Source of the DNA: Bugula neritina
Taxonomy: Eukaryota > Animalia > Bryozoa
Reading direction: 5' to 3'
Length of the DNA stretch: 64,000 bases
Assembly: GCA_964035545.1 (NCBI GenBank)
Contig: OZ037765.1
Coordinates: 34,533,504-34,597,503, forward strand
Shown: positions 1-39,446 of the stretch, piece after piece
Position numbering within the stretch: position 1 is the first letter of the stretch
Layout of the letters: every line of letters starts with the position of its first letter
Translations under genes and position numbers: made by a program
The notes under the pieces: model-generated
Database searches by the model: none
Told to the model about the DNA's origin: nothing
Seen by the model: the letters and a program-made list of their open reading frames with translations, nothing else

Positions 1-3000
1 TATCTCAGTATAATATTATAATATATCTCAGTATAATATTATAATATATCTCAGTATAACATTATAGTATATCTCAGTATAACATTATAATATATCTCAG
101 TATAATATTACAATATATCTCAGTATAACATTATAATATATCTTAGTATAATATTATATTATATCTCAGTATAACATTACAATATATCTCAGTATAACAT
201 TATAATATATCTCAGTATAACATTATAATATACCTCAGTATAACATTATATTATATCTCAGTATAATATTATAATATATCTCAGTATAATATTATATTAT
301 ATCTCAGTATAACATTATAATATATCTCAGTATAACATTATATTATATCTCAGTATAACATTATATTATATCTCAGTATAACATTATAATATATCTCAGT
401 ATACATTATAATATATCTCAGTATAACATTATAATATATCTCAGTATAACATTATAATATATCTCAGTATAACATTATAATATATCTCAGTATAACATTA
501 TAATATATCTCAGTATAATATTATAATATATCTCAGTATAACATTATAATATATCTCAGTATAATATTATAATATATCTCAGTATAACATTATAATATAT
601 CTCAGTATAACATTATAATATATCTCAGTGTAATATTATATTATATCTCAGTATATCATTATAATATATCTCAGTATAGTATTATAATATATCTCAGTAT
701 AACATTATAATATATCTCAGTATAGCATTATAATATATCTCAGTATAACATTATAATATATCTCAGTATAGCATTATAATATATCTCAGTATAACATTAT
801 ATTATATCTCAGTATAACATTATATTATATCTCAGTATAACATTATAATATATCTCAGTATAACATTATAATATATCTCAGTGTAACATTATAATATATC
901 TCAGTATAATATTATATTATATCTCAGTATAGTATTATAATATATCTCAGTATAACATTATAATATATCTCAGTATAACATTATAATATATCTCAGTATA
1001 ATATTGTAATATATCTCAGTATAACATTATAATATATCTCAGTATAACATTATAATATATCTCAGTATAACATTATATTATATCTCAGTATAATATTAAA
1101 ATATATCTCAGTATAACATTATAATATATCGCAGTACAACATTATAATATATCTCAGTATAACATTATAATATATCTCAGTATAACATTATATTATATCT
1201 CAGTATAACATTATATTATATCTCAGTATAACATTATAATATATCTCAGTATAACATTATAATATATCTCAGTATAATATTATAATATATCTTAGTATAA
1301 CATTATATTATATCTCAGTATAGTATTATAATATATCTCAGTATAACATTATAATATATCTCAGTATAACATTATAATATATCTCAGTATAATATTGTAA
1401 TATATCTCAGTATAACATTATAATATATCTCAGTATAACATTATAATATATCTCAGTATAACATTATATTATATCTCAGTATAACATTATAATATATCTC
1501 AGTATAATATTATAATATATCTCAGTATAATATTATATTATATCTCAGTATAACATTATAATATATCTCAGTATAACATTATAATATATCTTAGTATAAC
1601 ATTATAATATATCTCAGTATAACATTATATTATATCTCAGTATAATAATATAATATATCTCAGTATAACATTATATTATATCTCAGTATAATATTATAAT
1701 ATATCTCAGTATAACATTATATTATATCTCAGTATAACATTATAATATATCTCAGTATAACATTATATTATATCTTAGTATAATATTATAATATATCTCA
1801 GTATAATATTATAATATATCTCAGTATAATATTATAATATACCTCAGTATAACATTATAATATATCTCAGTATAATATTATAATATAATATCTCAGTATA
1901 ACATTATAATATATCTCAGTATAACATTATAATATATCTCAGTATAACATTATAATGTATCTCAGTATAACATTATATTATATCTCAGTATAATATTATA
2001 ATATACCTCAGTATAATATTATAATATATCTCAGTATAATATTATAATATATCTCAGTATAACATTATAATATATCTCAGTATAACATTATAATATATCT
2101 CAGTATAATATTATAATATATCTCAGTATAACATTATAATATATCTCAGTATAATATTATAATATATCTCAGTATAATATTATAATATATCTCAGTATAA
2201 TATTATAATATATCTCAGTATAACATTATATTATATCTCAGTATAACATTATATTATATCTCAGTATAGCATTATAATATATCTCAGTATAATATTATAA
2301 TATATATCAGTATAACATTATAATATATCTCAGTATATAACATTATATTATATCTCAGTATAGTATTATAATATATCTTAATATAACATTATAATATATC
2401 TCAGTATAACATTATAATATATCTCAGTATAACATTATAATATATCTCAGTATAATATTATATTATATCTCAGTATATCATTATAATATATCTCAGTATA
2501 ATATTATATTATATCTCAGTATAATATTATAATATATCTCAGTATAACATTATAATATATCTCAGTATAACATTATATTATATCTCAGTATAACATTATA
2601 ATATATCTCAGTATAACATTATATTATATATCAGTATAACATTATAATATATCTCAGTATAACATTATAGTATATCTCAGTATAACATTATAATATATCT
2701 CAGTGTAACATTATAATATATCTCAGTATAACATTATAATATATCTCAGTATAATATTATAATATATCTCAGTATAACATTATAATATATCTCAGTATAA
2801 CATTATAATATATCTCAGTATAACATTATAATATATCTCAGTATAATATTATAATATATCTCAGTATAACATTATAATATATCTCAGTATAACATTATAA
2901 TATATCTCAGTATAACATTATAATATATCTCAGTATAACATTATAATATATCTCAGTATAACATTATAATATATCTCAGTATAATATTATAATATATCTC

Positions 3001-3927
3001 AGTATAATATTATAATATATCTCAGTATAACATTATAATATATCTTAGTATAACATTATAATATATCTTAGTATAACATTTTAATATATCTCAGTATAAC
3101 ATTATAATATATCTTAGTATTATATTATAATATATCTCAGTATAATATTATATTATATCTCAGTATAATATTATATTATATCTCAGTATAGTATTATAAT
3201 ATATCTCAGTATAATATTATATTATATCTCAGTATAATATTATAATATATCTCAGTATAACATTATAATATATCTCAGTATAACATTATAATATATCTCA
3301 GTATAATATTATAATATATCTCAGTATAATATTATAATATATCTCAGTATAACATTATAATATATCTCAGTATAACATTATATTATATCTCAGTATAACA
3401 TTATATTATATCTCAGTATAGTATTATAATATATCTTAATATAACATTATAATATATCTCAGTATAACATTATAATATATCTCAGTATAACATTATAATA
3501 TACCTCAGTATAACATTATATTATATCTCAGTATAATTTTATAATATACCTCAGTATAACATTATAATATATCTCAGTATAATCTTAAAATATATCTCAG
3601 TATACATTATATTATATCTCAGTATAACATTATAATATATCTTAGTATAATATTATAGTATACCTCAGTATACATTATATTATATCTCAGTATAACATTA
3701 TAATATATCTCAGTATATTATTATAATATATTTCAGTATAATATTATAATATATCTCAGTATAATATTATAATATATCTCAGTATACATTATATTATATC
3801 TCAGTATAACATTACAATATATCTCAGTATAACATTATAATATATCTCAGTATAATATTATAATATATCTCAGTATAACATTATATTATATCTCAGTATA
3901 TTATTATAATATATTTCAGCATAATAT
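1..3927. repeat. 23-bp AT-rich tandem satellite (consensus ~TATCTCAGTATAACATTATAATA); continues off the left edge
   Basis: TATCTCAG recurs with period 23 (positions 1, 24, ...) with scattered variants. Confidence 0.98.
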
Positions 3928-4310
3928 TGTAGTGGGTCACGCGGTATCATAATGTAGAATTATCTCCTCTCCGTTCGGGGAATACTAAAGGCCCCAATGT
4001 ATTATCTAATAAGAAGTACCGGAAGATGATTTTCCGGCCCAGTGGCAGTTCCAGGGTAGTGAGCGGTTATCACGTTGTTGTGAGCGAGGACTCGAAGTGT
4101 GTACACGTATTATTAGATGACTATTGTATTACTATAATTTGATGTAATGTTTTATACTGTGTTTATTATGGATAATAAAGATTATTTTATGGCTACTACC
4201 CTAATAATTACTAGTTAGAAAAGCATACTGAATACGCAAGCAAAACCCACGCATAGTAATTGTGCAAATTACAACAGTGGTGGCAGCGGTGGGATCTTGC
4301 GTACATCAGG

Positions 4311-6029
4311 ATGGCAGAAGAAGGTACGGAGCTACCCATTCCACTGAATGAAGGTGAGGAAGACAATGTTGTGACACCCGTGGAACCCGTAGTGTTGGAA
4401 GAAGTGAGAGTTCTCAGAGAACCCAGTGAAAACAGGTACCGGCTGAAGGCGCCCACTTTTATTGATTAAAAAGAAATAGAGAAATTTATCCAAGAATTTC
4501 AAGATGTGATGGAAGTTGCACGGTGGCCACCAAGGGTGGCATTGCTCAAACTCAGAATGGCGCTGACGAACAAGGCTAAGCCCTACGGAGCGGGACCTGA
4601 CATTGACAGGATATTCGCTTCTCTGTGGGCCCGTATTGATGTCTCCGCCATAGATGCGCAGGCCCGCCTACAAAGGCTGCGACGTGATCTTCACATGCCG
4701 CTGCAGGAGCATGAGGCTGGCGCAGATCGCGTTCCGCGATCTGCCTCAAGCGAACCGTGAGAGGTATACTTATGATGCCTTCGTGCAATCCATTAACGAC
4801 TTGGGACTCCATCACCAGTTCCAAGCGAAAGCAGTCACCACAGTCGAGGGTGCCCTCGCAGTAGGAGAAGCTTATCTCCTGGCGAGTCACATGCACCAGA
4901 ACCGCGTGGCCTCCCCCCAGGTAGCCACGGAGCATTCTACTGCTCCTGCCAAACAAAATGCGGAACCCTCCGCGGTGGCTAATGTGACACAGATGACGGT
5001 GGCATGGAAGGTCGCTCAGATGACCGACATGCTAGCCAAACTGGTCTCCACGTTAGCTCCTTCAAGCCAGGTAGACACTGCCCGTGAGCCTTGCGGGCTG
5101 CCGACACAGTCACCAGGGCATAACTTCTGCTTGGAATGTGGAAGACTTAGACATTTCCAGAAATACTGCCCTCTACTCTAACAAGGGTTAAACTACCACA
5201 GATGTTCCCACCTCCTGCGGGCCGCCGGTGAATTACGCAGGGAGGACAAGGCGTCAGCCGCCCGCTGGGCATCACGCGAGGATACTGTGGAGTGGCGACT
5301 ATCGCGGCAAGTAGGCTGTTCAAGCCACTCACCACCTGGGTCCTCTATGCTACTCCGAAACAGGTCCGACGGGCTGTTGACCTCAGGGCCTGCGAGAAAA
5401 AGGGTACAGGCGCCGCAAGGCGTACCGCCCCAACCTCGGCAGCTGGTCAATAGCCGTTGCCAACCATGGACCCCTCGACCCACAGCGAGGGAGGTGCAAC
5501 CACGGCACGTACAGATGCAACCTCGCGGGAGTAGCTACTTCCTGCCAGGAAAGATAGCTAGCAAGCCTGCCAACTTCCTTCTAGACTCGGGTTGCGCCAC
5601 CAACCTCCTGAGCCGTCAGTTCTTTGACACCCTCAGCACTAAGGTCAGGAGCGGGTTGGCACAATCGTCACAAACAGGCTAGAAACACCACCCGTGAGAC
5701 ATAACAATCCACGGGTGAGCACACCGCCTCCCACAGTGATGATATCTCCAGGACCGCACACTAGGCAACCCCCAGCGTACCTCGGAGACTTCGTATATGA
5801 CTGCGCTACAAGCGGCAGTTATGAAAGTCTAACTAGGTATCGTAGGAGAAGACAAGCAAAGAAACGTGGGAGTTGTGAACACCACGAAAATATCAACTTT
5901 TGCTTTGGCAAAATCACGAATGAGATTCATCCGCCGGAAGCAAAAAGTCCGAGTCACGCTTCGCAACCACGCTGCCCGGTCTTTTCCTACGTTGATGCAG
6001 TCAAGAGTAGACGTGCCACGAAACAATAA
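4311..6029 (+). pseudogene. Disrupted gag-protease plus integrase C-terminal tail of G1
   Basis: YRLKAPTF..WPPRVALLKLRMAL, CxxC-H-C knuckle (CLECGRLRHFQKYC), FLLDSG and RQPPAYL..PRCPVFSY match G4 ORFs; stops and frameshifts. Confidence 0.9.
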
Positions 6030-6050
6030 TCAATACCACTCTCATTCAAA

Positions 6051-7092
6051 ATGTCTTACTATTTTGGATCGAAGGGTGAGTTAGTTATGTTTTTGGTACG
6101 GGAACTAAACTACATCAGTCAGCTCTAACTATACCGGTTAGCGAGCCGGAGATTCGATAATGAAACACAGTGGTGAGAACACACGTCGACTTAGATTCCA
6201 ATAATCTGCCATAGTGAGTGTGTTCTCGATCAACTATTCAATTAGCCTGAATCTCGCGAGTGTTTAACTGAACAGAGCACCTGTCAGGCTGTACATGCCG
6301 GCGGTACTTCAGTGTATAATCTTTAACACTGCTAACTCTTTCAGATAACACTCGAGTGACCACCTCCCGGTCACGGGACTAGCCAACCCCTCTGCCTATG
6401 GAGGAAGAACCAGAAATGGAACATGGCCTGCCCGTGGTGCTTTGCCGACGACACAGATGGGTGTCGCTAGCGACGGAACAGAGAATAAAAGAAGCCTGGA
6501 GACCCAGCAGACCCGCCAGACCTGTCAGGTCTGCCTCGAGGAATGCCCATCACACCGCTCCCTGCGTCTACATGTAGACGCACACTTCCTGCTGCACTTT
6601 TGCCCGTGCGGGTTCCATGACGTGTACCCGTAGCCAGTTATAGTACATAAGATGAGCTGCTTCGCAGGAGAAGGCCACGTCGTGGGCGGGGACAGTTTCC
6701 CCCAGTATTTGGATGTCATCAAGCCGGTTGTCAAGAAGGCTCTAACCCTGGCTACGCTAACTTTGGGTTTCCAAATACTACTGCTGTCTGCCCGTCAGAA
6801 GTCCTCCATGATAAAGGCCCCGTTAACTACCCCTGTTAATCCTAGTAGCGCCCCCGAACCAGAAGAAGTAACAACACCCCTCGCCCCAGAGATTACTCCA
6901 CCCCCAGGACCCAGCTGATTGGCAACAGTAGAAGAGCGGCTTCTGCGACTACAAGCCGAATTTACACAACTAGCTCCGAACCTGCTCGAAACAACGACAA
7001 GCCTATACCAACTAAAAGACTCTGTGGGGCGATTGAAGCTGAGGCTACGTGCCCGACAAGCTCGGCACAGATCGCGCTCACTACAGGAGTGA
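6051..7092 (+). pseudogene. Spliced accessory ORF3 of G1 (exon1 6051-6075, exon2 6345-7092): zinc finger + coiled coil, degraded
   Basis: ATG TCT TAC..AAG G|GTGAGT donor; CTAAC..TTTCAG|AT acceptor; CQVCLEECPSHRSLRLHVDAH..CPCG and LATVEERLLRLQAEF homologous to the G3/G4 ORF3; in-frame stops. Confidence 0.8.
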
Positions 7093-7758
7093 GAGCCTAC
7101 CTACATAAGCATGCCTGTTAAAGGCACCTTCTCGGTGGACTACATTATTGACGTGTAAATGAGGAGTTTCCCCGGCCATTGGCCATTGGCCATTGGCCAC
7201 TGTACAGCACCCTCTCTCTCTATAGTTGACCAACTGTGTGTTCGACCACTCTGTCTACATTATTGTATATATGCTTTTGTGTACACAACATTTCTCTTCT
7301 TTCTGTTTGTGAGTTTAATTATGTCCGTTTTTATATATAGACTATTATACTGTTTTTTTGTGTTTTTCTTTTGTTATCAGAAAGTAGGGCTTTCTGCTGG
7401 TGGGGGCGATGTAGTGGGTCACGCAGTATCATAATGTAGAATTATCTCCTCTCCGTTTGGGGAATACTAAAGGCCCCAATGTATTATCCAATAAGAAAAA
7501 CTGGAAGATGATTTTCCGGCCCAGTGACAGTTCTCAGGTAGTTAACAATTATCACGTTGTTGTGAGCGAGGACTCAAAGTGTGTACACGTAGTATTAGAT
7601 GGCTATTGTATTGTAGTAAATTGATGTAATGTTTTATACTGTGTTTATTGTGGATAATAAAAATTATTATACGGCTACTACCCTAGTAATTACTAGTTAG
7701 AAAAGCATACTGAATACGCAAGCAAAACCCACGCATAGTAATTGTGCAAATTACAACA

Positions 7759-8135
7759 ATAATATTATAATATATCTCAGTATAACATTATAATATATCT
7801 CAGCTAGTATAACATTATAATATATCTCAGTATAACATTATAATATATCTTAGTATAACATGATAATATATCTCAGTATAATATTATAATATATCTCAGT
7901 ATAATATTATAATATGTCTCAGTATAATATTATATTATATCTCAGTATATAACATTATAATATATATCAGTATAACATTATAATGTATCTCAGTATAACA
8001 TTATATTATATCTCAGTATATAACATTATAATATATATCAGTATAACATTATAATACATCTCAGTATAACGTTATAATATACCTCAGTATAACGTTATAT
8101 TATATCTTAGTATAACATTATATTATATCTCAGTA
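7759..8135. repeat. 23-bp satellite, continued
   Basis: same unit as 1-3927. Confidence 0.95.
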
Positions 8136-9313
8136 GGGGTAACGGGGGCACAACGGGCCGAATTTTGCATTTGTTGCTCTCATTCGTCTGTTTTTCAAGT
8201 TACTAGTTCAATAATCTCTAGTTTTAATGCTACATCTGTTGTCTATTACAGGTACCAGTTTGTTGTTTCTATCTTTTTCACAACTTTCAGAATAATGAAA
8301 TTTTCATGACGAAAAAATTGGCTCATTGTGCCCCGGTACCGGGGTACAATGGGCCACTGGGTGGAACACAACAAATATTTTGAAATTTTGCGTATTTTGT
8401 TGTATCTGATCTTTATTTATTTAATAATACAAATAAATAAAGATACTCTTTCAGATCTACAGCAAAATTCATGTTTTAGCTGTACGGTTTGTGCCACTAC
8501 GGATAGCAGAGGAAGGCAAAATCAAACGCACGTCACTCGGTTCTGCAGTGCCATCATCATTACTGTTTTAAAATAAAAATGTTTTGTTATTTTCACTTCA
8601 GAGGAACGTTTATTAAAAAAAACTTTACTAAAATGTACTACAAAAATTCTGAGTGAACTTTTTTCAATGAACTGTAGCTAAGGTGCATGCATGGCTGAGG
8701 TTTGTGACTGGAGTACGGAACGGAAAGGGGAGAGCGAATGAGCAAATCACAATTTATTTCAGTCAAATGCATGTATATTCCCTCAATGGTGTAATATATA
8801 ATGATTATCATGACTATCTACTAGTAGCAAGTAGCAACAGCGGAGTGTTTTGTATTATGTATAAAATGGCAAAGCTTCAACCTCACCAGATGTATGTATT
8901 AGGGGAGCTTCAACTTGTAGTTTTGTAGTCTTACCATGATGTCTTTGATATTTTACAAAAAGGTCAGAAATGGCTATATTTATAGATTTTAGTAACAGTT
9001 CAACAAACTTTTTGGGCAAACAAACTAATAACAGTGATCAGGGTGCAATAATCAGATGACCCATTGTGCCCCGGTCAGCGTGGCCCATTGTGCCCCGTGT
9101 GGCCAAATTGAAAATAAATGTGCCTCAAGAAAAATTTATTTCAGTGTTTGCTGTTATACTAGTTAAGCATTGTAGAGACAAGCAATGGCAACAATATTAG
9201 TAAAATCTAGGCTTCTTGCTTTTGAGTGTAAAAAGTTATAAGGCTTCAACGACATTCTAAAAGATTTACGCCTGCTTTTTGTACCCCTATGACCGTTGTG
9301 CCCCTGTTACCCC
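8136..9313. mobile_element. Non-autonomous DNA transposon (~1.2 kb) in the satellite
   Basis: TIRs GGGGTAACGGGGGCACAACGG / CCGTTGTGCCCCTGTTACCCC flanked by TA; internal CATTGTGCCCCG motifs at ~8325 and ~9062-9097; no transposase ORF. Confidence 0.85.
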
Positions 9314-9507
9314 TATATAATATTACAATATATCTCAGTATAATATTATAATATATTTCAGTATAACATGATAATATATCTCAGTATATATAGTATTATA
9401 ATATATCTCAGTATAATATTATAATATATCTCAGTATATAACATTATAATATATCTCAGTATAACATTATAATGTATCTCAGTATAATACTATAATATAT
9501 CTCAGTG
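9314..9507. repeat. 23-bp satellite, right end
   Basis: same unit; ends ~100 bp from an LRR exon donor. Confidence 0.92.
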
Positions 9508-9606
9508 TAGCAAATCTGTTAGAGTTTTATGAACACATGTAAAAATATATTTTTAATCTATATTTATTACAATAATTATCTTTCTACACTATTATGTAAT
9601 ACACAC

Positions 9607-9750
9607 CTGTTTGGTAGAGTTGACAGTTTACAGCTACCCATTTTCAACTTTCTCAATGATAGTAAGGATGTGAATATATTGTCAGGTAGACCTTCACATA
9701 GCTTATTCTCTGATATATCCAATACCTCAAGATTCTTCAGTGAAGATATG
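9607..9750 (-). CDS. LRR cassette exon 7 (ISSLKNLEVLDISENKLCEGLPDNIFTSLLSLRKLKMGSCKLSTLPN)
   Basis: 144 nt, CAG| .. |GTGTGT, phase 2-2, two LxxLxL repeats. Confidence 0.9.
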
Positions 9751-12700
9751 CTGCTATAAAATACAGGTAGAAAATCATCAAAGTCAATTTAGCTATAATA
9801 TGTATTAATACTCCACATTTTACTCAATAGCTCATTTATGTTCTAGTATAGTTTTATATTGCAACACATTCATACCTAGTCTCAATATAACATATTTCAC
9901 TGCGGAATAATTTAGTTGTCAACATATAGCAGAGTAATGAATGAGAAATTGTCATACCATTTCTATATATGTACATCTGATTCAATATTATAGTAATTGT
10001 CTTAAGAAATCTCGTACACACAGCGTTTAGTGTGGGGCCACACAACACATTTTACACGTGTGTGTGTTTCGAGTGCAAAAATTTATTAGACAATGATGTT
10101 AGCGTTAAACTTTACTGCTCCCCTACAGGCGTTTGCTTTTTAAAACTACGTCTTCGGCAAAGTGATTTTGATATTATAAAAGCGGAAATGCAAACTATAT
10201 AAAACTGTTTTAATTCAGCTGGGTAAAAGTTAAATCGTAAATTAAAATAAAAAAGTGTGCTCGCTAAATATTACATGGTAATAAGCCAATTAGATCAAAC
10301 ACGAACGAGCGTGTCGCTGAGCTCGCTCAGCATGCTAAACGCATGAAAATCCCGCTCTTGACGTCTAATCTTTGAGCTAAATGTCATTTCTCGCACGTCA
10401 CGCGCGTGTAAAACATGTCGTGTGGCCCTACACTTAGTATAGGCCTAATAAGGATAGTGCAGATAACTTCATTATATATAATGTCATAGTACTCATACAC
10501 ACCTGTTTGGTAGAGTGGGTAGTTTGCATCTCTCCATGTCCAACTCTCTCAATGATAGTAAGAATGTGAATATATTGTCAGGTAGACCTTTAGATAGGTT
10601 ATTCCTCGATATATTCAATACCTCAAGATTCTTCAGTAAAGAGATGCTGTAACATAACATACAGGTATGAAATGTTGCATAATATTTTAATAAGAACATA
10701 ACCACAGCGTGTAATTCATTGAACATGACATCAAATCTAGTTTTACGAACAGGGTATTGAGAGTTGTCATCTACCTGAATATTAAGTACACATGTACTGC
10801 ACCAATCACTCCAATAATAATATTTTAACAGCCAAGTCATGAATTAATATTGTATAGTTAGTAGAGTTTCTCCTATTCTATATTATTGCACACGTATTAA
10901 ATAATACACACCTGTTTGGTATAGTTGACAGTTTACAACTACCTATGCCCAGCTTTCTCAATGATAGCAAGGATACAAATATATTGTCAGGTAGATCTTC
11001 AGATAGGTTACTCTTTGATATATCCAATACCTCAAGATTCCTCAGTGAAGATATGCTGTAACATAAAAATATTATACAGGTAGAAAATAATCAAAGTTAA
11101 TTTAACCATACTACATATCATTACTATTACTGTACATTCTATACTTAACAATATGAGCATTGCATAATATTGTAACATATTTATAACTCAATTTAATATA
11201 ACTTATTTGACTTTGAATAATAGACCCTTTTCAGATGCCCGGGTATCTCTTTTACACTTGAGAGTTGTGTCCTCCCAAAGTCAGTAGGTTGAACCTTTGT
11301 ATAAAGAGCAAACTCATTCAAAATTTAATGTTTGGCTGCTACTTAAAATTATAATTATGTTATAGAATTGTTCTTTTAGGAGATGGATATTTTGGTATAT
11401 GCACACATATTAGCAGTTGAAAAAAATTTAAAAAAAATTTCTTCAAGAGAATTTTGAAAAAAAGTAAACTTGAAAGCATTTTTGTGGTTTTCATTACTGA
11501 GCAATGCTAAAGTGCCACTTCAGCATTGCTCAGCAACGAAAGTCACAAAAAGGAATTCAAGATTATTTTGTTCAATCTATTTTCTTTTTGGGAGGACACA
11601 ACTCTTAAATGTAGGGGGGACATTGAGGACCTCTGAAAGGGATCTATTGAGTTGTCCACATTTATTAGAGGAATAAGTGAGAAGTTGTCACACCATTTCT
11701 ATCTGAGTACATATCCAATAGAATAGAATAAAATAGTTGACTTGTGACATATAATATACATAGAGTCTAGTTGACTCAATAAAGATAGTGCAGATAACTT
11801 CATAATGTATGATATAATACACACCTGTTTGGTAGAGTTGACAGTTTACAGTTCTGCATGCTCAACTCTCTCAATGATAGTAAGGATGTGAATATATTGT
11901 CAGGTAGACCTTCAGATAGGTAGTTATCTGATATATTCAATACCTCAAGATTCTTCAGTGAAGATATGCTGTAACATATTAAATACAGGTATGAAATCTT
12001 GCTTCAGATGAATAGAGTATTACACTCGCAATATACCAGCTTATGCTTTAATCTCAATAACACATTGAGATTTAACGGCATAAATTCACAACATTATCAA
12101 ACATATAGAAATGTATGAAATGAAGTTATCAGGTGAGAGAGTATTCTTCTCACTCTTTGCATAAAAATGATCAAACTAAGAATTTGCCATTTTCATAAAA
12201 ACTTGCATAGCTTCTCAAGTTTTAATAGATCAGTCAAGTAATTGTTCAAGAATATATTTTCAACATAGTTTCAAAGCTGGGCAATGACCTATAACGGTAA
12301 AGCAAGGCAGGATAGTGTAATTCATTAAGTTGAGAGCCTTCAAACAGCTAACAAAATAAGTTGGTTAGGCTCAACCATGCTACTGTGTATTTTCTGATGT
12401 CATATGAGAGGACCCCATCTCATATCTGCATACATTGTTCAAGGATGAATTGCAGAAAGAGCTTCCTGCCAGTTTGCTGCTGCTGCTGCTGCTGCTTGGG
12501 TTTTAAAGTATCTACTTTGAGATGTTGAATGGTTACAATGACAGATCACATTAAGAAATTCTGTTATTTATTCTGATTTCTTTTAATGATTCTTATTGTT
12601 ACCTTTAAATAAGTCATTTTTTAACTTACAAAATAGATAAAACAAATTATATTATAGGATAAACTCCTTGATTCAACTTTCCCACAGGGCAGTTCAACCT

Positions 12701-15700
12701 GCCCCCTATTGGGGCTTGTTATGTCAAAAAACCCACAGTTTAAATTTGGCTCTATGTTAGTGAGTAAAATGTTTATGCATTTAGTTTTGATAGAAAAAAG
12801 CAGCAACATATGACTGACTTTTATGGTGCTGATCTTTGAACTGGCAAAAAGCTTCTTCAAAACTTGTACTCAAAAACGCAAGTTTTAGTTAAACTAGCCC
12901 CACGCTCTCTTATATCAAAATACCGTAAGCTTCCACACAATTATATTGGCAATATATTTTCATATTATATTTATTACAGCATCATTCTACATTACAATAT
13001 AATACACACCTGTTTGGTAGAGTTGACAGTTTACAGCTTTTCGCGTTCAACACTCTCAATGATAGTAAGGATGTGAATATATTGTCAGGTAGACCTTCAA
13101 ATATGTTATTCCTTAATATATCCAATACCTCAAGATTCTTCAGTAAAGATATGCTGTAACATAATATACAGGTATGAAATGTTGTATAATATTTTAGTAA
13201 GAATATAACCACAGCATATAACTCATTGAACATGACGCCAAATCTACTTTCACTAACAAAGTATTGAGAGTTGTCATCTACCTGAATATTAAGTACACAT
13301 GTACTGCACCAATCACTCTATAATCATATTTAAACAGCCAAGTCATGAATTAATATTGTATGGTTAGTAGAGTTTCTCCTACTCTATATTATTATATATG
13401 TAATTATATAATACACACCTGTTTGGTAGAGTTGACAGAGAACAGTCCCACATGTACAACTCTCTCAATGATAGTAAGGATGTGAATATATTGTCAGGTA
13501 GAGCTTCAAATAGGTAGTTATGTGATATATCCAACACCTCAAGATTCTTCAGTGAAGATATGCTGTAACATATAACACACGGGTAGAAAATCATCAAAGT
13601 CTATTGAACTCCTGGGTATTATCATTAGCACTCTACATTTCACTCAACAGTGTAATAGTAGTATAGCTTAATTTATATCAGTAGACCGTTTTCCAAGGAA
13701 TTGAAAGGTTAACAGATCTAAACAAAGTGGTGACAGTCAGCACAACAAATAAATAAAGGAATTCATACCTCAACTGCTCTTCAGCATTGCTCAATAACCA
13801 AAATCACGAAAATGCTTTCAAATTTACTTTTTTTCAAAACTTATTATGAAGAAATGTTTGTAAAATATTTCTTGAACTGCTAATATGTGTGCTATACCAG
13901 AATATCTATCTAATATAAGAACAATTCCATGGCATAGTTGGGATTTTAAATAACAGTCAAACTTTAAAGTTGTAATTAGTTTGTTCTCTATAAAACATGG
14001 TTTAACTCAATCCCTGTTGAAGAGGACTCAACTCCTAACTTGAAATTGAGTACCGGGGGGGGGGGGGGCATTGGAAAAGGGTCTGTATTATCACCTGTTC
14101 TCAATATAACCTATTTAATGCAACATAGTTATATAGTTATACTGCAAAATAATTTACTTGTCCACATTTATTAGAGTAATAAGTGAGAAGTTGTCATACC
14201 ATTTCTATCTGAGTACATCTAATAGAATAGAATACAATAATTGACTTGTGACGAATAATATACACAGAATCTAGTTGAGTCAACAAAGATAGTGCAGATA
14301 ACTTCATAATGTATAATATAATACACACCTGTTTGGTAGAGTTGACAGTTTACAGAGCACCATGTTCAACTCTCTCAATGATAGTAAGGATGTGAATATA
14401 TTGTTAGGTAGACCTTTAGATAAGTCACTGAATGACATATTCAATACCTCAAGATTCTTCAGTGAAGATATGCTGTAACATAATAATTATATACAGGTGT
14501 AACAGTATATTCAATTCTACATAATTATCACATACTATTATATTATTATATGTTTATTGATATGTTTGAAAGACACCAACTCAGTTTAAATTGAAGCGTA
14601 AATAGAAATACAATAAATAAGGTAAATAATACAAAAGTTGTTACTAAAGCTAGTGTTATTGTGAGGGGAGATTACTCCACATTCTACTACAAGATAATAT
14701 CTCACTTATTAATATAGTTTTATATTATAACAATATAATACCTGGTCCAGTCAGCATTACTCTCTACTTCAGATACCCTCAGATGTGTGAGATGAGGAAA
14801 CAGTTTGTTGATATTTGGAGGAATGTCATCCTTCAGTACAACATGAGTCACTGTATGATGTCTACTTATATCATTGATCTCTTCTATAGTGTAGGATGTA
14901 GTATCATTCTTCATCCACTCATTACCAGCCCCATCTATACTGGATGTGTTGAACCACACACTGTACTTATCTATAAAATATGTGCAACTTTATAAATAAA
15001 AGTTTATAATAATAGAATGTTTGTAAACACCATCAATGCATAGAACCATAACTGGCAATAGTTACACAATAAACATTTTATATTTTAACTACTTAAAATT
15101 ACAGACAATTAAATTGAAATCCTGTGATATAATCTGAATGTATATTCAAGTTGTGCCCACTTTGTCAGACTATACCTAAGAGTATGACTCATCCCTGTAA
15201 CTGGTGCAGACGTCAACTATAGCAGATGACAGGTAAAGGGTAGCCATGTTGTTTATACTTCTGTACAGTATGTGTTATAGTATTCTAGTGTAATATAATG
15301 TAATATAAAGCAATATAATGTAATATAATGTAATATAATGTAATATAATGTAATATAAAGCAATATAGGTCAGTAAAATGTGCATGTTATATAACAGTTA
15401 ACTAAGGTTACTACAATTATTGTAACGTAACATGATGTAGGTTAGTATAATTGCTACAATATAATATAAAATAATAATAACACTTTATAGTATAGGTCAG
15501 CATCATATTTGTGACATAATATAATATATATGTCAGTATAACAATATATTATACTATAATATAGTATAATATAAGTCAGTATAATAATAATATATTATAC
15601 TTTAATATATTATAATATAAGCTTCAGTATAATAACATTATACAATAATGCACCCAGTTGTGGTCAACACAAAGTTAGGAGCAAAGTATTAAAAAGTTGA

Positions 15701-16076
15701 ACAAAGCTTGTGTTTCTAGATCAGAAATGTAACAAATAGAGTTATGTTCTCGTGAGATTTTCAACCACACCCCAATGCAAATTTTTTTAAGAGAACTAAA
15801 GAACTAATGCTACTTCAATTTCTCTAGTGCTGCAACTGAATGTCATGTAACTCATAAAAGCGTATAATGTAAAAGTTCTGCAGCTACTGGTAGTATTTAT
15901 ATCCATATAATTTACTAACCTAACACAGACTGACCTGAAGGTGGAGGTGAAGGTGAAGGTGGAGGTCTAGGTGTAGGTGGAGGTGCAGGTGACGGTGGAT
16001 GTGGAAGTGTAGGTGTAGGTGTAGATGGAGGTGTAGGTGGAGGTTTGGGTCGAAGTAGAGATTTACGTTGACCCAT
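9607..16076 (-). CDS. Gene A, 5' part: N-terminus, cap and LRR cassettes of a probable LRR-Roc-COR(-caspase) protein; exons 16076-15935, 14970-14742 and seven 144-nt LRR exons; 3' end lies left of the window
   Basis: All exons have AG/GT boundaries and join in frame (phase 1, then 2-2); no stops in the hand translation. Confidence 0.85.
10030..10433. mobile_element. MITE (PIF/Harbinger-like) in LRR intron
   Basis: ~30-bp imperfect TIR GTGTGGGGCCACACAACACATTTTACACG / CGTGTAAAACATGTCGTGTGGCCCTACAC; TTA duplication; absent from the paralogous introns. Confidence 0.75.
10503..10646 (-). CDS. LRR cassette exon 6 (ISLLKNLEVLNISRNNLSKGLPDNIFTFLLSLRELDMERCKLPTLPN)
   Basis: 144 nt, AG/GT, phase 2-2; seen in ORF 10493..10840. 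Confidence 0.9.
10912..11055 (-). CDS. LRR cassette exon 5 (ISSLRNLEVLDISKSNLSEDLPDNIFVSLLSLRKLGIGSCKLSTIPN)
   Basis: 144 nt, AG/GT, phase 2-2. Confidence 0.9.
11221..11646. mobile_element. MITE/foldback fragment in LRR intron; related inverted copy at ~13682-14086
   Basis: Ends TAGACCCTTTTCAGA / TCTGAAAGGGATCTA; internal hairpin ~11470-11560; 11400-11510 is reverse-complement similar to 13780-13895. Confidence 0.6.
11825..11968 (-). CDS. LRR cassette exon 4 (ISSLKNLEVLNISDNYLSEGLPDNIFTSLLSLRELSMQNCKLSTLPN)
   Basis: 144 nt, AG/GT, phase 2-2. Confidence 0.9.
13010..13153 (-). CDS. LRR cassette exon 3 (ISLLKNLEVLDILRNNIFEGLPDNIFTSLLSLRVLNAKSCKLSTLPN)
   Basis: 144 nt, AG/GT, phase 2-2; seen in ORF 12982..13233. 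Confidence 0.9.
13419..13562 (-). CDS. LRR cassette exon 2 (ISSLKNLEVLDISHNYLFEALPDNIFTSLLSLRELYMWDCSLSTLPN)
   Basis: 144 nt, AG/GT, phase 2-2; seen in ORF 13379..13597. Confidence 0.9.
13682..14086. mobile_element. MITE/foldback fragment, same family as 11221-11646
   Basis: Ends TAGACCGTTTTCCAA / TTGGAAAAGGGTCTG; inverted internal similarity to the other copy. Confidence 0.6.
14329..14472 (-). CDS. LRR cassette exon 1 (ISSLKNLEVLNMSFSDLSKGLPNNIFTSLLSLRELNMVLCKLSTLPN)
   Basis: 144 nt, AG/GT, phase 2-2. Confidence 0.9.
14742..14970 (-). CDS. Gene A cap exon (DKYSVWFNTSS..INKLFPHLTHLRVSEVESNADWT)
   Basis: 229 nt, TTTTATAG| .. AG|GTATT, phase 1-2; LxxLxV degenerate LRR. Confidence 0.8.
15935..16076 (-). 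CDS. Gene A first coding exon: MGQRKSLLRPK + Pro-rich tract
   Basis: ATG at 16076 with in-frame stops upstream; acceptor at 16129-16130; phase-1 donor G|GTCAGT (alternative at 15920); probable 5'UTR exon donor GTAAGT at 16464. Confidence 0.7.
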
Positions 16077-17871
16077 CCTGTAGTCACAGGTTACAGCTCT
16101 AGTTGTATTCAATAGTCTTCATTCTCATCTGTAACAACTATATACATGGTAGAATACTAGAAACTAAAGCTAGCTTTTGACATTTCTGTATCATATCTAT
16201 ACTGATACCATGTATACCAGCCATATAGTTATATCATATAATATACTCTAGAAAGGATGTAAAATCAAGTAACACCTGTAAGATGATGTACTGAGAAATT
16301 TTATAACATCAAATAAATGTTAAACTCTCTTCATTTTCAGGTTAATCAACTCTGTAGATGTGTCCATATTCAACCTAAATTTACTCATTATGGGCCCACA
16401 CAGCACTAAAGTAAATTAACCTTTCAGTCATTTACATTTTTTATAATAAATAAATTATACTTACAGTGAATTAAAATGAAGTCAGCAGGTGAGTTGAGAT
16501 ACTCTTCACCATCTGCATATGTTACATAATATCCTCCATAAACTGACTTGATTATCTTCTCACTCTGACTAGGAAGGGATAAGTGACTTCCCTCTTAGTG
16601 TGTGCTAGTTAGTGCTGCACTGCAAGTAATAGTGTTTATATGATCACGTGATAGATTGTTGAAATTTATGCTCTTTGGTATTGGCGTTAGACACATTTAG
16701 AATAATGATATTCACCCAAGCTATGTATACTCTTTGGTATTAGTTCTAGTTTATAATGTAGTACCTTTGCGGTTGACAAATTAGCTATACTGCCAATAAC
16801 CAGTGAGAAATGTGAAGAAATGTGAACATGCTGGTATAATGAAAAGCTTTGTTAGCTGATATGATGATGGCTATAAGGGATAGATGAATACACGTATGGA
16901 GAGAGTTTTGTAGCTGTGATACACAGGTTATGCTCAACTTGTTTGTAGTATAATTCCTGATATTTGAATTTACCATTTTTGTCCCTAAACACACATGCAT
17001 AAACAAGTACACATACGAAAAAAGACAAAACACAGGGTCCTTGCCCTTTTCATTATCTATATGGAATCTTGTGAGAATGGATCATGACCTATGGAGAGAG
17101 TTTATTATTATTATATAGTATATACTTACTATTATTATATAGTATATACTTACTGTTATTATATAGTATATACTTACTGTTATTATAATATGTAAAACAT
17201 TTCATAAGATTAGGTTAAGAGATAATACAAATATATAAGTCAAATCAATTAATTAAACTGATTCATGGAATAATCTGTCACTAAAGGTACTCTGTTCAGG
17301 ACTTTACAACTCCAAAGATTCCCTCCAGAAACTTTTTTAATGAGGAAACTTTAGCAAGCATATTTCTGCTTTAGCTTTATTTGAAGCTTTTGGAAATAGC
17401 TGGGTTATTCAAGCTGGTCAAACCTGCAGGCAGATGATATGTTTATGTCCTTCTAGTCTTGGTTCTACAGATATAAAGCTATAAACCACTGGAATTATTA
17501 CGGCTGGCATATAATGTAGTTCATCTCTATAAAAGGGAGGGCATGGAATATAATGTGGTTTATAGTCTTTAGTAGATAAGCTACAAGCTAGCCTGAGGTG
17601 ATTGGCTAACTGCCTTACAGGCAACCAGATTTCCTACCAGCTTGTATGGCTTGCAGATATTGGCTATTGGAGTGGCACTTTATTATAGACTGTCGAGTTA
17701 GTAGAACCTTATATTGGCGCAGTAACATGTTTTTCTTATCTAGAACACAACCTTTCTCCATTATTATTATTATTCCGGTTAAAAATATATTTATGTCTAG
17801 GCCAACAACTGTGATGGTTTAAATCATTTAGAATTTGTCTGCATACACAGTGGAAAATGCTGTGTTGAGTA

Positions 17872-18146
17872 GTGGCCTTACTAGTCCCCTTGGTACTGGC
17901 CCTGGTACTAGCCCTAATACTGGTCCAGCTACTAGTCCTAATACTGGTCCAGCTACTAGTCCTAATACTGGCCCTGGTAGCCTACTAGTCCTAATACTGG
18001 CCCTGGTAGCCTACTAGTCCTAATACTGGCCCTGGTACTAGTCCTAATACTGGTCCAGCTACTAGTCCTAATACTGGTCCAGCTACTAGTCCTAATACTG
18101 GTCCAGCTACTAGTCCTAATACTGGCCCTGGTACTAGTCCCTAATA
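17872..18146. repeat. 24-bp minisatellite (ACTAGTCCTAATACTGGTCCAGCT)
   Basis: ~11 tandem units. Confidence 0.92.
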
Positions 18147-19710
18147 CCTTTGCATCTTTATGAAGACATATTATCATGAATTCCTCTACAGTAGCTTTAT
18201 GAGTAACTCAAACAGTAGCTGTGTTGCCTACAAACTAACCTCTCGTCTATTATAGTTTTTTGAAGGACTATTTTTGGTAATTTAAATGCTAATTTCTCCA
18301 ATGAAACTCTGGGTGAATCAATGTATATATTAAAATGATAATTATAGACTAATAAAAGCAAAGTACTAATAGTATTATCTGTAATGAGATGCCAACATGC
18401 AAAACTAGCCTTGTGGGACACACCAATCTCTGTCTTTCCATGTATCTATTTAATGCTCACCTTTATAAGTAAGCCAACATATTACTGGTTCCAATAAGCA
18501 AGTAATTATTAGTATCTAAGGGTTAAAATATAAGCTGAGGTCCTGAAGTCTAGACTCATGAAGTAGTAATATTCCAGAATTAACTCACCGATAGTAAATT
18601 TAGCCAGTTTTATCCTATGCACACATGTAATATAATCTGCCACAAAACAGAGTCCAAACCCTTCTCTTGAACTATAAGATACAGAGGGAGCATTTCTTCA
18701 AGACTAAAAGTTATGTAATTGACATATCATTGTGAAGAGCAGTATCTTTATAGTAGAGTAACAGCACCTGCTTCTTTCACAATTTGCAGTATATATGAAG
18801 CTCACTGATACCCAAACAGGAAGCAGTGTTCTTGCATGTTGACACCCCAACACTATTCAATCTAGTTTAGTGAGCACCTTTTAATACCTCATATATAATT
18901 CATTTCAAGTAGGAGTGATTTTTGTCAATTAGAATAAATTCAAATCAATGATTAGTAAGATAATTATCCCTATAGAATGATAATAGAAAATATATAAGAT
19001 ATAAAACTGTCATTTCCAGCTCTGAACTTAGATGCAGTTTATTCATTGCACTGCTTTACCCTCTGGTTGACCTTGAAATTGTAACAAATAAATAATAATG
19101 GCTGTGGTTAGCAACTCTTCATTGTTTATAATCCTATGAGAAGGTAAGGATGTGAGTAAAGTAGTATAGATATGTAATAGGATGTAATCAAATAGATTAA
19201 ATGTCTCTATTCATATAATACAGCATAGAGATTGCCTCAGTTTTATAAGTATTAGAGTGGTGACAAGGTCAAGGCATTTTGAAGTATTTTAATAAAATTT
19301 TGAATTCTAACAAATCTCTATGTTTAACTTACAGCAAAGAAAACTTAGATAATGACAAAACAACAACTTTCAAGTTCAAGTGTACTAAACTGTTGGATAG
19401 TTGCAATGTCACTGTCACTCACTAATTACACAATACAAATAACTAAATACATGTAATGCCTGTTGTTAGTGTTGGTGTACTAAACAGTAGATGTGAGTAT
19501 TGAGATATAATGATAGAATATATTCTAGTACAGATTACTACTGAGTGGACTGTAGTCATGTGACTGAGCTGGTGGTTTACTGTTCTGTCAACTCAGAAGT
19601 CAACTTCAAAGGACTTGCACATGATATCAAGCAAGTCCTATGAACTTGTAACAGTGAGTCAAACATATAAATACTCCAAGGTGTCTCTCCTCCAATAGTA
19701 CAGTTAGTTA

Positions 19711-19935
19711 CTACACTGCATCACCTAGCAACACACTGTCATCTAGAAACACACTGTAACCTAGCAACACAGCATCACCTAGCAACACACAATCACCTAG
19801 CAACATATCATCACCTAGGAACACACTACCACCTAGCAACACACTATCACCTAGCAACAAACTATCACCTAACAACACATCATCACCTAGCAACACAGCA
19901 TCACCTAGCAACATACTATCACATAGCAACACCAC
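19711..19935. repeat. 18-bp minisatellite (~CATCACCTAGCAACACAC)
   Basis: ~12 degenerate tandem units. Confidence 0.88.
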
Positions 19936-20482
19936 ACTGCCAACTCCCAACCAGCCTGCAGAAAAGAGTTTCAGCAGCTGGGATTAAGAAACCGAGGAGA
20001 ATTGTGTAGAATATATAGAGAAATGAGAAGGTGGACACATGTAATACATATTGAAGAATGGGGGAGTAACTCCACCTGTTAGAGTGAATTCATACCTTTT
20101 CTGAAAGAGTTCTGAGTTCAACTCACCTTATCGTTACTTGCTGCCATTTATTCAATGCTCTTGAAGTAGAATACAAATGACTAGATTCTGAGAAGAGCCT
20201 AGAAACTCATCACAGGATAAATTATGGTGCAGAGGACTTTGTGAGATTATGCTTCAGCCAGACTAGACTCTACTGAAAACATATAAACACACTTTCAGAG
20301 CTGGTCCAGTGGGAAGTGAAGGGCAACTCTAGCATCTCCTTTGGAATCAACATCCATGGCAAAATCAGACTGGAGGATAATTCTATAAAACACAAATTAG
20401 GTTGATATGCACTCTCGGGTGTTGGAGAAGTTTGAAAAAAAAAGCAATTCTTAAACCTCAAACTAAAATCACAGCAGTGCAA

Positions 20483-21003
20483 TCACTGAATAACCTGGTA
20501 ACTCACTGAATAACCTGGTGACTCACTGAATAACCTGGTAACTCACTGAATAACCTGGTAACTCACTGAATAACCTGGTAACTCACTGAATAACCTGGTG
20601 ACTCACTGAATAACCTGGTAACTCACTGAATAATCTGGTAACTCACTGAATAACCTGGTAACTCACTGAATAACCTGGTAAGTCACTGAATAACCTGGTA
20701 ACTCACTGAATAACCTGGTAACTCACTGAATAACCTGGTAACTCACTGAATAACCTGGTGACTCACTGAATAACCTGGTAACTCACTGAATAACCTGGTG
20801 ACTCACTGAATAACCTGGTGACTCACTGAATAACCTGGTAACTCACTGAATAACCTGGTAACCCACTGAATAACCTGGTAACTCACTGAATAACCTGGTG
20901 ACTCACTGAATAATCTGGTAACTCACTGAATAACCTGGTGACTCACTGAATAACCTGGTAACTCACTGAATAACCTGGTAACTCACTGAATAACCTGGTG
21001 ACT
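20483..21003. repeat. 20-bp minisatellite (TCACTGAATAACCTGGTAAC)
   Basis: ~26 near-identical head-to-tail units, no spacers. Confidence 0.95.
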
Positions 21004-21014
21004 GTAACACTTTA

Positions 21015-21601
21015 CTGACTGTCACAATGTAGACAATCTCAGTTCTATTACTCCATCTGTAAATTTTAAACTGACTAATCTCCACGTCAGCATCTCTCAG
21101 ATCTGGAGGCAGCAGATGAACAGAGAGTGAAGTGTCCTCCACATGAGACAACCAGCACACACAGTTATTAGATGTGACCACCAGTGGTTCTGTTTTCTCT
21201 ACTTCTACCAGTTCAGTCACCTCAGTTCATAACTACAACAGTTACACTTGTATTATGAACCAACCATCATTAGGTTATCATTCTCTATATTCTATTCTCA
21301 CTACTTCAACATTTCTAATGCTATAAATATACTCCACCAGATGACCAACAAATTGTGTTATTGTAAACATATTATCTTATAAATCACAAAACAACTGAAA
21401 TACTCAAAGTGAGAGATTTACCAGTTTCTTCTTCCAGTCCTTGTAGTTAGAAAGTTCATTTGTCCACACACAAAGTCTCTTCTTTCCAAGATTCTCAACC
21501 AAACCAACATAATGTTCTTCTTCGTGATCATAAACCACAGGCAGACAGAAACTGCTCTCTGATTTGAGAGTACAACTTGATACTGTCTGCTGATCACTCA
21601 C
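21015..21601 (-). pseudogene. NOL11: NOL11-like (nucleolar protein 11) N-terminal exons, probably pseudogenised; further degraded exons likely at ~20130-20435 and ~21710-21790
   Basis: Exon 21601-21422 VSDQQTVSSC..CLPVVYD..RLCVW and exon from 21232 L*TEVTEL..EKTEPLVV resemble the NOL11 N-terminus as I recall it (VSDQK..CPAV..LRIW..LSAEV..TEPLV); in-frame TGA at 21227-21229. Confidence 0.6.
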
Positions 21602-23381
21602 CTAAGTTCATCTCAACTCAAACTCCAGTATCTAATAATATTCTAAACAGAGAACTACTCTCATGAATGAAGCGTATAAACACATGTAGAGTTATTATTG
21701 CCTTAACTTTCAGTAATAATTTATTCCACAGTGAATTATATGAGAAAGAGGCTGTACTGCAGAGAATACTCATCTAGGCCGGTGAAACTCTGAAATAACT
21801 AAATTTATTTTCTCAACTCAATAGCAAAATTCTAAGATCGTTTCAAAAGTGATACAAACAACTCATCATAGCATAAATTTTAAGGCCATTTAGAATTAGT
21901 TTCGCAAATACATAAAGGCTATCTTGATTATGCATGATTTTAAATTGAACTACAATGGTTGATTTATGATGATTACTCGATAACTAGGTATGAATAAAAT
22001 AAATTTTAAAGTAATTAAAGGCTAAGTTAGTAAATGTGTGTCATCACATTTCAATACTTAATAGCTAGCACTGATATTTACTTTAAATATTTATTAGGAG
22101 TCAGTGCCATTCACCGAAAGACTTAATTAAAAAGTTAGTATCAACTGATTTAATCCAATACTTATAGTTATTACGAATTAGTCAATTCAAAATCAAGTTG
22201 AAAAAAAATTCCTGCGTATTTACATCGATTGTCATAATAATTAATAACTGGTTGACTCGGCATCACTCAGTGCTGCATTAGCCCTATGCTGAATTGATTT
22301 TACTATTATAGCACTATTCACTTTTTAGCGACCGTGAATGACTTTGACCGTGTGCTTAGTCAGTAAGAGTAAGTTTTTATTAAATTTTACTAAAACACTT
22401 TAACTCAGTTTCGCTTATAGTTATTGAGTTATTCATACTGTGATTATCACTATTCGTACAAATACAAGTCATGAAGTAGACTTTAACTAATAGTTAGTGT
22501 TACAGTAACTAACTAAAGTTGTGTTTTTACTAATCTTAGTTTAGATATACTTACACCAGTTTAAGTTACTAGAGTTAGTCAGTTACTGTTAGAAATAAAC
22601 TAGATTTAGTAGGAGTTACACTAGAACTACGAACACTAAAACTAGAAGCAAAAAAAATTGTATGTCAAAGTCTAATTACGTAATAAGTATGACTTTTACT
22701 GCAAGTCAAAGTACAGGTCCAACCAGTCTACCACTACTGCACTAGTAGTAGTAGTAGTACTAGTAGTGGTACTACTACAACGTCTGCTGCCTCTGGACCT
22801 GGCACTGGTTACTGTTTTAGCGTTTAGTACTAGTAGTAGTATTATTAGTATTACTATTACTAGTAGTAGTTATACTTATACTAGTGTCTAGTAGTACTGT
22901 ACTAGACCTAGTACAATAATTTATTAATTATAATATTAATTATATTATATTCGTTATAATTACTCAAATTAGCATTACAGAAAAGGAAATATGCTACCTT
23001 ATATATTGACATAGACTGCCTATTTGTCAAAATAACATTGCTAATGTCAAATGAAGAAAATGCCGAAAATTTCTTCGCCTTTGCAAAGGAAGCAATGGCC
23101 CAAGTATCATTTATTGTAGTTGCGGTTGTTTCACTGGTAGTAGCCATAACTTTTTACGCCGGAACTGCATAGGTAGTGTTTTTGTCCTGTCGTTCGCGTA
23201 CTACAATTATTCACAAATTCAGTTTTTATAGTCAAATTCACTAATGAATTTTTTTTATAAAAACGTGTTTTTATATATAAGTTGAATGCTATAAATTTTG
23301 TTGAAAACCATATATGAAGCAAAGTAAATTGTTACTTAAAAAGAATACAACTCCTAAAACATTTATTGCTTGTTGCCTAAA

Positions 23382-39402: not shown

Positions 39403-39446
39403 TAATATATCTCAGTATAACATTATAATATATCTCAGTATAATAT
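39403..39446. repeat. Two units of the same 23-bp satellite
   Basis: TAATATATCTCAGTATAACATTATAATATATCTCAGTATAATAT. Confidence 0.9.

Follow-up and report, generated by a model that had tools for sequence, protein, structure and literature searches.

The closest described system to the locus treated here is the LRR-ROCO family of brown algae (Ectocarpus and Saccharina; Zambounis et al. 2012, PMC3341825; Teng et al. 2024, PMC11378527), in which each leucine-rich repeat (LRR) is a 72-bp phase-2 exon, the genes are clustered, their exons are shuffled, about four concave sites are positively selected and splice variants are reported (PMC3341825, PMC11378527, PMC4104024). Up to nine splice variants have been reported for such ROCO genes with LRR exons, and brown-alga ROCOs were described as keeping a simple LRR-ROC-COR arrangement (PMC11378527). 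Here, we analyzed a 64,000-nt stretch of the bryozoan Bugula neritina genome (the window; C1:34533504-34597503 in the 216-Mb assembly GCA_964035545.1), the minus strand of which carries, at 9607-14472, seven LRR exons of exactly 144 nt each, hereafter called cassettes. These seven exons probably form the sensor arm of one gene in a large germline family of clustered LRR-Roc-COR-caspase genes, a family that recombines and is positively selected. Judged by its sequence, the array would be an animal version of the brown-alga type, with two-LRR exons and a caspase end.

The first-pass annotation of this DNA had drawn a parallel to exon shuffling in the Ectocarpus ROCO genes, which is correct (PMC3341825, PMC11378527). 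Both systems place an LRR arm N-terminal to Roc-COR, encode it in tandem phase-2 LRR exons of the same size and keep a 72-nt period (2 × 72 in the bryozoan). As well, both have clustered and expanded genes, exon shuffling between loci and positive selection on a few concave-face sites. They differ in the host, which is an animal here and an alga there, and in the exon, which holds 144 nt and two LRRs in the bryozoan, the second with Cys at the Asn position, whereas the algal exon holds 72 bp and one LRR. Moreover, the bryozoan gene has a C-terminal caspase, while the alga has the simple LRR-ROC-COR, and alternative splicing is reported in the algae, while the bryozoan short contigs give a single, ambiguous skipping-like joint.

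Other receptor systems share parts of this design. The variable lymphocyte receptors (VLRs) of lamprey and hagfish are built of similar 24-residue LRR modules, VLR-A and VLR-B being among the best structure matches of the cassettes, and are hypervariable in strand and loop at the same positions. In VLRs, the modules are donor cassettes that have no splice sites and are copied, in lymphocytes, into a germline gene that is incomplete, whereas the bryozoan cassettes are ordinary exons with AG and GT sites, in frame, of a complete germline gene, which does not fit somatic assembly of the VLR kind. The LRR domains of plant NLRs and of animal NLRs and Toll-like receptors share with the array the clustered families, the unequal crossing-over and a ratio of nonsynonymous to synonymous change (ω) above 1 at solvent-exposed positions, but they use NB-ARC or NACHT in place of the Roc-COR switch, recruit an effector in place of the fused caspase, and differ from the strict exon-per-module layout seen here. 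Arthropod Dscam1 likewise encodes a binding surface in tandemly duplicated exons of the same phase. These exons are used in a mutually exclusive manner, while the bryozoan cassettes are joined serially, as indicated, weakly and at family level, by a junction from short contigs. Literature searches found no description of such an LRR-Roc-COR-caspase cassette family in bryozoans or other animals.

The cassettes and their paralogues

From the upstream end, the seven minus-strand cassettes are located at 14329..14472 (cassette 1), 13419..13562 (cassette 2), 13010..13153 (cassette 3), 11825..11968 (cassette 4), 10912..11055 (cassette 5), 10503..10646 (cassette 6) and 9607..9750 (cassette 7). A repeat search of the window recovered them as one family of seven copies, 79-89% identical over ~190 nt. 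Each exon has ..(t)tacag or tatagcag on its upstream side (the latter in cassette 7, the last of the array) and gtgtgt.. on its downstream side; it ends in AG and the next one starts with C, which gives a shared AGC (Ser) codon and phase 2 on both sides. The translations comprise two 24-residue LRRs per cassette, LEVL(D/N)ISxNxL..LPDNIF followed by LRELxMxxCxL..LPN, i.e., two LxxLxLxxN/CxL motifs (LEVLDISxNxL and LRELxMxxCxL) with a period of ~24 residues. The exact 144-nt length, the 2-2 phase and the symmetric two-LRR design claimed at first pass are borne out by the exon boundaries, phase and translations of all seven, and the quoted strings RELNMVLC through RKLKMGSC appear in the translations, every one and in the same order. 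Profile and structure searches, which were run on exons one by one, agree with the LRR assignment: single cassettes matched Pfam LRR_1 above the cut-off (E 8e-7, cassette 4) and LRR_8 and LRR_4 just under it, and among solved structures LRRC15, lamprey VLR-A/B and repebodies (designed repeat proteins), with E from 1e-11 to 1e-14. Since each exon is a self-contained two-LRR module of phase 2-2, modules can be gained, lost and recombined without breaking the frame.

The array itself carries the trace of such a gain. Cassettes 4-6 with their introns (10467..12004, minus strand) are a duplicate of the three-exon block formed by cassettes 1-3 (12980..14512, minus strand), so that cassettes 4, 5 and 6 duplicate the positions of cassettes 1, 2 and 3, respectively, with a spacing of 2504-2507 nt. 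Identity between the twin introns (that of cassettes 5-6 and that of cassettes 2-3) is 90.9%, compared with 81.2% and 86.8% for the exons that flank them.

There are at least 190 candidate places for one cassette in the genome, 40 of which were scored and showed 92-100% identity to it. A 17-mer of the scaffold occurs 139 times genome-wide, compared with three occurrences of its reversed control, an excess far above chance. Most cassette copies lie in a cluster of ~1.1 Mb on C1, with others elsewhere on C1, on C3 and on C5. A set of 87 cassettes was extracted from the window and 20 fetched genomic stretches (labels such as L001 and L013 denote fetched stretches), while the arrays at C1 34.6-34.97 Mb, on C3 and on C5 lie outside this set. 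All 87 have 144 nt, no stop and no indel, with 87 AG acceptors, 86 GT donors and one GC donor, and ~15 nt of intron on either side of them are nearly invariant. More distant relatives were found in two metagenome contigs from other samples (L023 and L024), whose Roc-COR exons are ~40% identical to the array's and which also contain caspase exons. Their upstream two-LRR phase-2 exons measure 138, 141 and 144 nt (L023 499-639; L024 222-359, 688-831 and 1610-1750). As relatives only ~40% identical carry two-LRR exons of these three lengths, the two-LRR exon design is old within the family and predates the 144-nt subfamily.

When the cassettes were labelled by their flanking introns at ≥90% identity, the window gene read A D. 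F G. I (cassettes 1, 2, 4, 5 and 7 being of flank types A, D, F, G and I), L013 read ADOFGPHI, L016 ADOFGPHHI, L018 AD, L017 AK, L019 A..K, L020 J..K, L021 JR, the upstream paralogue (L022).Q.R and L010/L011 CNCNC.C.E in the same notation. The paralogous arrays thus hold 2-9 modules, and first and last modules are common to arrays in differing combinations. Chimeric cassettes were present as well. In L019, the first cassette (L019_3667) follows an A-type intron, and its flanks are 96% identical to those of the A cassette of L017; its exon body is 21 of 144 nt off that cassette and 3 nt off an F-type exon elsewhere, with the switch of type located after the first 46 invariant exon bases. Such a pattern is what would be expected as the residue of an unequal crossover between cassettes A and F. 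Similarly, the first 72 nt of cassette 1 differ once from the A type (L013_932), while its second 72 nt differ from it ten times and only once from L008_8008, a cassette of an unrelated array. The distances in the two exon halves are correlated less (r 0.54) than those of random site partitions (0.63, p 0.03), which, together with the chimeras, indicates exchange at the level of both the whole exon and the single LRR. A test of the pairwise homoplasy index (PHI) type found neighbouring sites more incompatible than shuffled ones, as the hypervariable codons are physically adjacent, and is uninformative on recombination. Unequal crossing-over or gene conversion is what the chimeras suggest, the breakpoints falling within the invariant scaffold or at the conserved ends of the introns. 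Duplication, loss and recombination of cassettes without harm to the frame, as was supposed at first pass, is therefore visible among the paralogues, in arrays of 2-9 modules and chimeric cassettes. This shuffling is germline history, and is silent on events within an animal.

RNA evidence was taken from X1, a run labelled symbiont-metagenome RNA-Seq and presumed to be RNA, and was set beside X2, a DNA run, both of which were seen as short contigs. The depth of X1 is focused on exon-holding bins, with none or nearly none in most intron bins, and the exceptions hold repeated elements that are deep in the DNA run too. A joint with GT..AG ends (14472->14742) connects the upstream exon to cassette 1, the contigs include one cassette-to-cassette junction, and in a further contig the end of cassette 7 (9607) is followed by 22 nt that, but for one mismatch, equal the start of the Roc-COR exon. 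The expected splice junctions are thus present in RNA at the level of the family and perhaps for the array's own copy, because several X1 loose ends deviate from that copy and the last cassette of the nearest paralogue differs by 1 nt. Some candidate joints were discarded. The loose ends at 14967/14968 and 9607 were not assigned to the array's gene, where the exact strings are absent, and so come from paralogues or alleles, and the joints 9466->11808 and 12405->12516 were not accepted as splices, as they are without GT..AG ends and located in repeats.

Among the alternatives, the one that survives best, albeit as an unlikely one, is diversification within the animal, in which regulated skipping or choice of cassettes (Dscam-like) or somatic rearrangement (VLR-like) would turn one gene into many receptors. 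The phase 2-2 symmetry keeps every cassette combination in frame, the algal splice variants are a point in its favour (PMC11378527), and in one RNA contig 14742 is joined to 9750, a splice that would leave out six cassettes. However, the cassette side of this joint amounts to no more than 20 nt and, since the first 31 nt are the same in cassettes 1 and 7, the joint fits 14472 equally well, so it was rejected as a six-cassette skip. Moreover, the splice sites are strong and alike in every cassette and nothing points to competing signals, the cassette-to-cassette junction contigs argue for serial and not mutually exclusive use, the DNA run X2 contains no joint removing a cassette, and the gene that houses the cassettes is complete in the germline and its introns are canonical, which sets the cassettes apart from VLR donors. 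The variants listed for X2 (zero within cassettes vs. ~22 in introns) were not used here, as exon contigs are common to paralogues and rare variants are lost in contigs. The 'modular receptor-diversification system' of the first-pass annotation thus holds for germline evolution, with its mosaic arrays and selection, but is not supported beyond it, where the sole skipping-like RNA joint is ambiguous.

Variation and selection at the binding face

Among 84 distinct cassettes, residues L11, L33, L36, C41, L43 and P47 are invariant, whereas amino acids (aa) 15, 39 and 40 take 11-14 different residues (3.1-3.3 bits) and aa 12, 17, 37, 42 and 44 take 6-10 residues each. In terms of the LxxLxLxxN/CxL motif, the variable columns are x5, x7, x8, x10 and x12 of both repeats and x3 of the second. 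In known LRR structures, these x positions are those of the strand and of the ascending loop, which together line the concave face. A concave-face placement of the variable LRR positions was likewise concluded for brown algae (PMC11378527). An AlphaFold model of 47 residues, which was built from an 83-cassette alignment and had a predicted local distance difference test (pLDDT) of 71 (46-52 in four other models), has its strands at VLx and ELx and the variable sites at the strand end and in the loop just after. Hypervariability at the strand and loop positions over a near-invariant scaffold, as described at first pass, therefore stands, with never-changing Leu, Cys and Pro beside the sites of 11-14 residues.

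For the analysis of selection, a class of sites was set from the motif before rates were examined, which avoids circularity; it comprises x3, x5, x7, x8 and x10 of both repeats, i.e., aa 10, 12, 14, 15, 17, 35, 37, 39, 40 and 42. Changes were counted by Fitch parsimony on a maximum-likelihood tree, and the codon model was GY94 in IQ-TREE. By parsimony, the class sites had 36 synonymous and 266 nonsynonymous changes, which corresponds to an ω of 2.5 with their own synonymous rate or 3.6 with the global rate (binomial p 2e-9), while ω was ~0.8 at the non-class sites, and the structural Leu codons showed up to 15 synonymous changes and zero replacements. With GY94, ω was 3.0 at the class sites as opposed to 0.87 at the others, and forcing ω = 1 cost twice the log-likelihood difference (2dlnL) of 38.8 for the class and 1.3 for the rest; these codon tests work on short, recombining exons and a weak tree. 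The first-pass annotation had named an ω of 1 or less, with variation spread evenly, as the outcome that would speak against it, and the class ω of 2.5-3.6 and the focus of variation on the x positions are the contrary.

A tree-free yardstick was obtained from 25 cassette pairs that do not overlap and in which the 200 nt flanking each side (400 nt of intron) align at ≥80%. In these pairs, the intron divergence (K_intron) was 0.042 and the proportion of synonymous differences (pS) 0.044, compared with a proportion of nonsynonymous differences (pN) of 0.226 in the class and 0.036 elsewhere. The class pN was 5.4 times the intron divergence (bootstrap 4.3-6.8) and exceeded K_intron in 22 of the 25 pairs. 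As well, the three duplicated pairs in the window had a class pN of 0.352 vs. 0.099 in alignable intron (Fisher p 1.5e-7) and 0.159 at synonymous sites (p 0.004). The class codons thus fix amino-acid changes about five times faster than the linked introns or the synonymous sites.

These rates bear on a second alternative, concerted evolution without positive selection, in which conversion homogenises the scaffold and lowers synonymous diversity while a relaxed surface drifts, so that the excess would be an artefact of a deflated yardstick. Conversion and chimeras are indeed evident, the 87 cassettes are all but identical in the scaffold and in ~15 nt of intron at either end, and the nearest neighbours of exons often stand in unrelated introns. 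However, the linked introns diverge at the synonymous rate (0.042 vs. 0.044), with the class sites fivefold above both, and this yardstick is independent of the exon synonymous sites. Moreover, drift cannot raise nonsynonymous change over the neutral rate, conversion merely redistributes variants and cannot make 11-14 residues at one site, and none of the 87 cassettes has a stop or an indel. We therefore regard this alternative as quite improbable.

Gene context, introns and mobile elements

The exon directly upstream of the array (14742..14968, minus strand) has its 3′ end at 14742 (..AG/gt), in phase with cassette 1, and an uncertain 5′ end (14965-14968); a Pfam search of it gave no match. 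Further upstream of the LRR region, at ~15935-16070 on the minus strand, a proline-rich stretch of 12- and 18-nt repeats (PPTPPSTPTP..) with a possible donor at 15934/15933 was observed. It is probably an upstream exon of the array's gene, as the RNA loose ends at 14967/8 run into a similar repeat from a paralogue.

On the other side, cassette 7 splices over an intron of ~12 kb to the Roc-COR exon of the array's gene, which lies 2.6-4.7 kb before the window start (L001 5294-7367, minus strand) and has 691 codons. Cassette 7 ends in AG and this exon starts with C after ..gtcag (..gtcag/CATACAG..), in the same phase, which places the array and Roc-COR on one polypeptide. The exon encodes additional LRRs and a Roc domain (PF08477, E 4e-7, 30.7 bits, cut-off 27), together with a weak COR-A signal (E 0.0095, 16.3 bits, Pfam cut-off 35.3), while COR (PF16095) is annotated on record in relatives at 33-40% identity. 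Downstream of it, two exons match caspase (PF00656) with E 6.4e-11 (42.8 bits, cut-off 21.4) and E 9e-4, and SHG and HACSG, i.e., the His and Cys catalytic motifs, were read in the caspase open reading frame (ORF). The order and strand of the caspase exons suggest that they share one transcript with the Roc-COR exon. The array had been said to feed the ROCO-caspase, and this is right in kind, an in-phase Roc-COR exon being followed by caspase exons, but not as to the copy, since the Roc-COR exon within the window (37034-39223, minus strand) belongs to the next paralogue upstream, distinct from the array's own gene. The caspase exons of this upstream paralogue extend on the minus strand from ~34.2 kb down to ~24.4 kb, and its four cassettes (L022) sit just past the window end. 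The caspase active-site stretch is FHACSG in both paralogues (window 25352-25702 and L001 839-1123, both minus strand). The whole gene unit of ~41.7 kb is tandemly duplicated (window 16400-24300 vs. L002/L001, window -19000 to -11000), and the duplication takes in conserved intergenic ORF pieces, e.g., 20966-21226 matching -13610..-13287, which may be receptor 5′ exons or a separate gene.

Most of the last intron of the LRR region occupies 1..9520 of the window (minus strand). It contains a 23-nt AT-rich minisatellite (unit like TATATCTCAGTATAACATTATAA, GC ~0.17) at 1-~4000, 8016-8150 and 9290-9520, which runs on for ~2.3 kb before the window (L001 ~7700-10000), makes up ~7.5 kb of the intron and is broken at ~4000-8000 by a GC-rich stretch with ORFs that read as retroelement-like. 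At 39227-39457, ORF text resembling the satellite suggests that the upstream paralogue carries the same satellite beside its Roc-COR exon; a Gypsy element comes next, at ~40-47 kb. Gypsy-type retrotransposons (GC 0.50-0.58; reverse transcriptase, integrase and gag ORFs) were found at 27800-32900, 40000-47000 and 50000-56000 within the AT-rich receptor genes (GC 0.31-0.37). In the upstream paralogue, one of them stands among the caspase exons, and the array's gene has a related element among its own caspase exons, before the window. Within the array, elements like miniature inverted-repeat transposable elements (MITEs) are inserted between cassettes 6 and 7 (10029..10434, 45-nt inverted ends) and between cassettes 4 and 5 (11253..11613, 27-nt inverted ends and an inner palindrome), with a related copy at ~13690-14090; they are deep in both sequencing runs and explain much of the length difference between the duplicated three-exon blocks. 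A (CTG)7-like microsatellite was also observed at 12477-12497 in the long intron between cassettes 3 and 4, where reads are cut in both runs.

That the array belongs to a decaying or non-functional copy, i.e., a pseudogene in a gene-rich, transposon-invaded cluster, is the least probable alternative, for although the last intron is burdened with the minisatellite and the retroelement-like insert, a Gypsy element has entered among the caspase exons and the RNA junction contigs are at least 1 nt off the array's copy, every one of the seven cassettes is open and in phase, as are the upstream exon, the Roc-COR exon of 691 codons and those caspase exons that were checked, every insertion is intronic, and 343 of 663 placed RNA contigs are ≥99% identical.

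A putative receptor family of a colonial animal

Several points weigh against the reading of the array as the sensor arm of a recombining and positively selected receptor family. The function of the family members is predicted. A protein database search yielded solely unnamed metagenome ORFs, with no named homologue and no transcript-derived full-length protein. The RNA data are short contigs of one presumed-RNA run, some junction contigs derive from paralogues, and expression of the array's own copy is therefore putative. Gene conversion inflates the exon divergence in the flank-matched pairs and breaks the tree assumption of the codon tests, and synonymous change is higher at the variable codons (0.104 vs. 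0.033), which is partly an artefact of path-averaging at codons with multiple hits. In addition, the binding-face assignment stands on the register of the LRR motif and a model of moderate confidence, COR is detected weakly and under the Pfam cut-off, and ~7.5 kb of minisatellite with a retroelement-like insert in the last intron may impair this copy of the gene.

Under the germline-family reading, which we still consider likely, unequal crossing-over and gene conversion between near-identical scaffolds would reshuffle the modules, and diversifying selection would retain and add variety at the binding face. The protein may act as an intracellular receptor in a single chain, the LRRs of which would bind a ligand and thereby govern the Roc-COR switch and hence the caspase. 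Its possible roles in the colonial animal are self/non-self recognition, immunity or the control of symbionts. A further proposal, which we hold to be doubtful, is that cassettes are used combinatorially within an individual or colony, by skipping, choice or somatic recombination of scaffolds, to give an individualised LRR-GTPase-caspase repertoire; if so, it could be a basis of colony self/non-self recognition or symbiont control.

To our knowledge, immunity and allorecognition are almost unstudied in the bryozoan phylum. If the germline-family reading is true, a lophotrochozoan would have reached or kept the brown-alga design, i.e., a Roc-COR switch with frame-neutral, recombining and diversifying LRR exons, and wired it straight to a caspase. 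Such a one-chain sensor, switch and executioner would be a possible counterpart of the NLR-caspase inflammasomes. The array may serve as a tractable system in which to study what exon phase and invariant scaffolds contribute to receptor evolution, and as a defined locus for asking whether invertebrates individualise their receptors.

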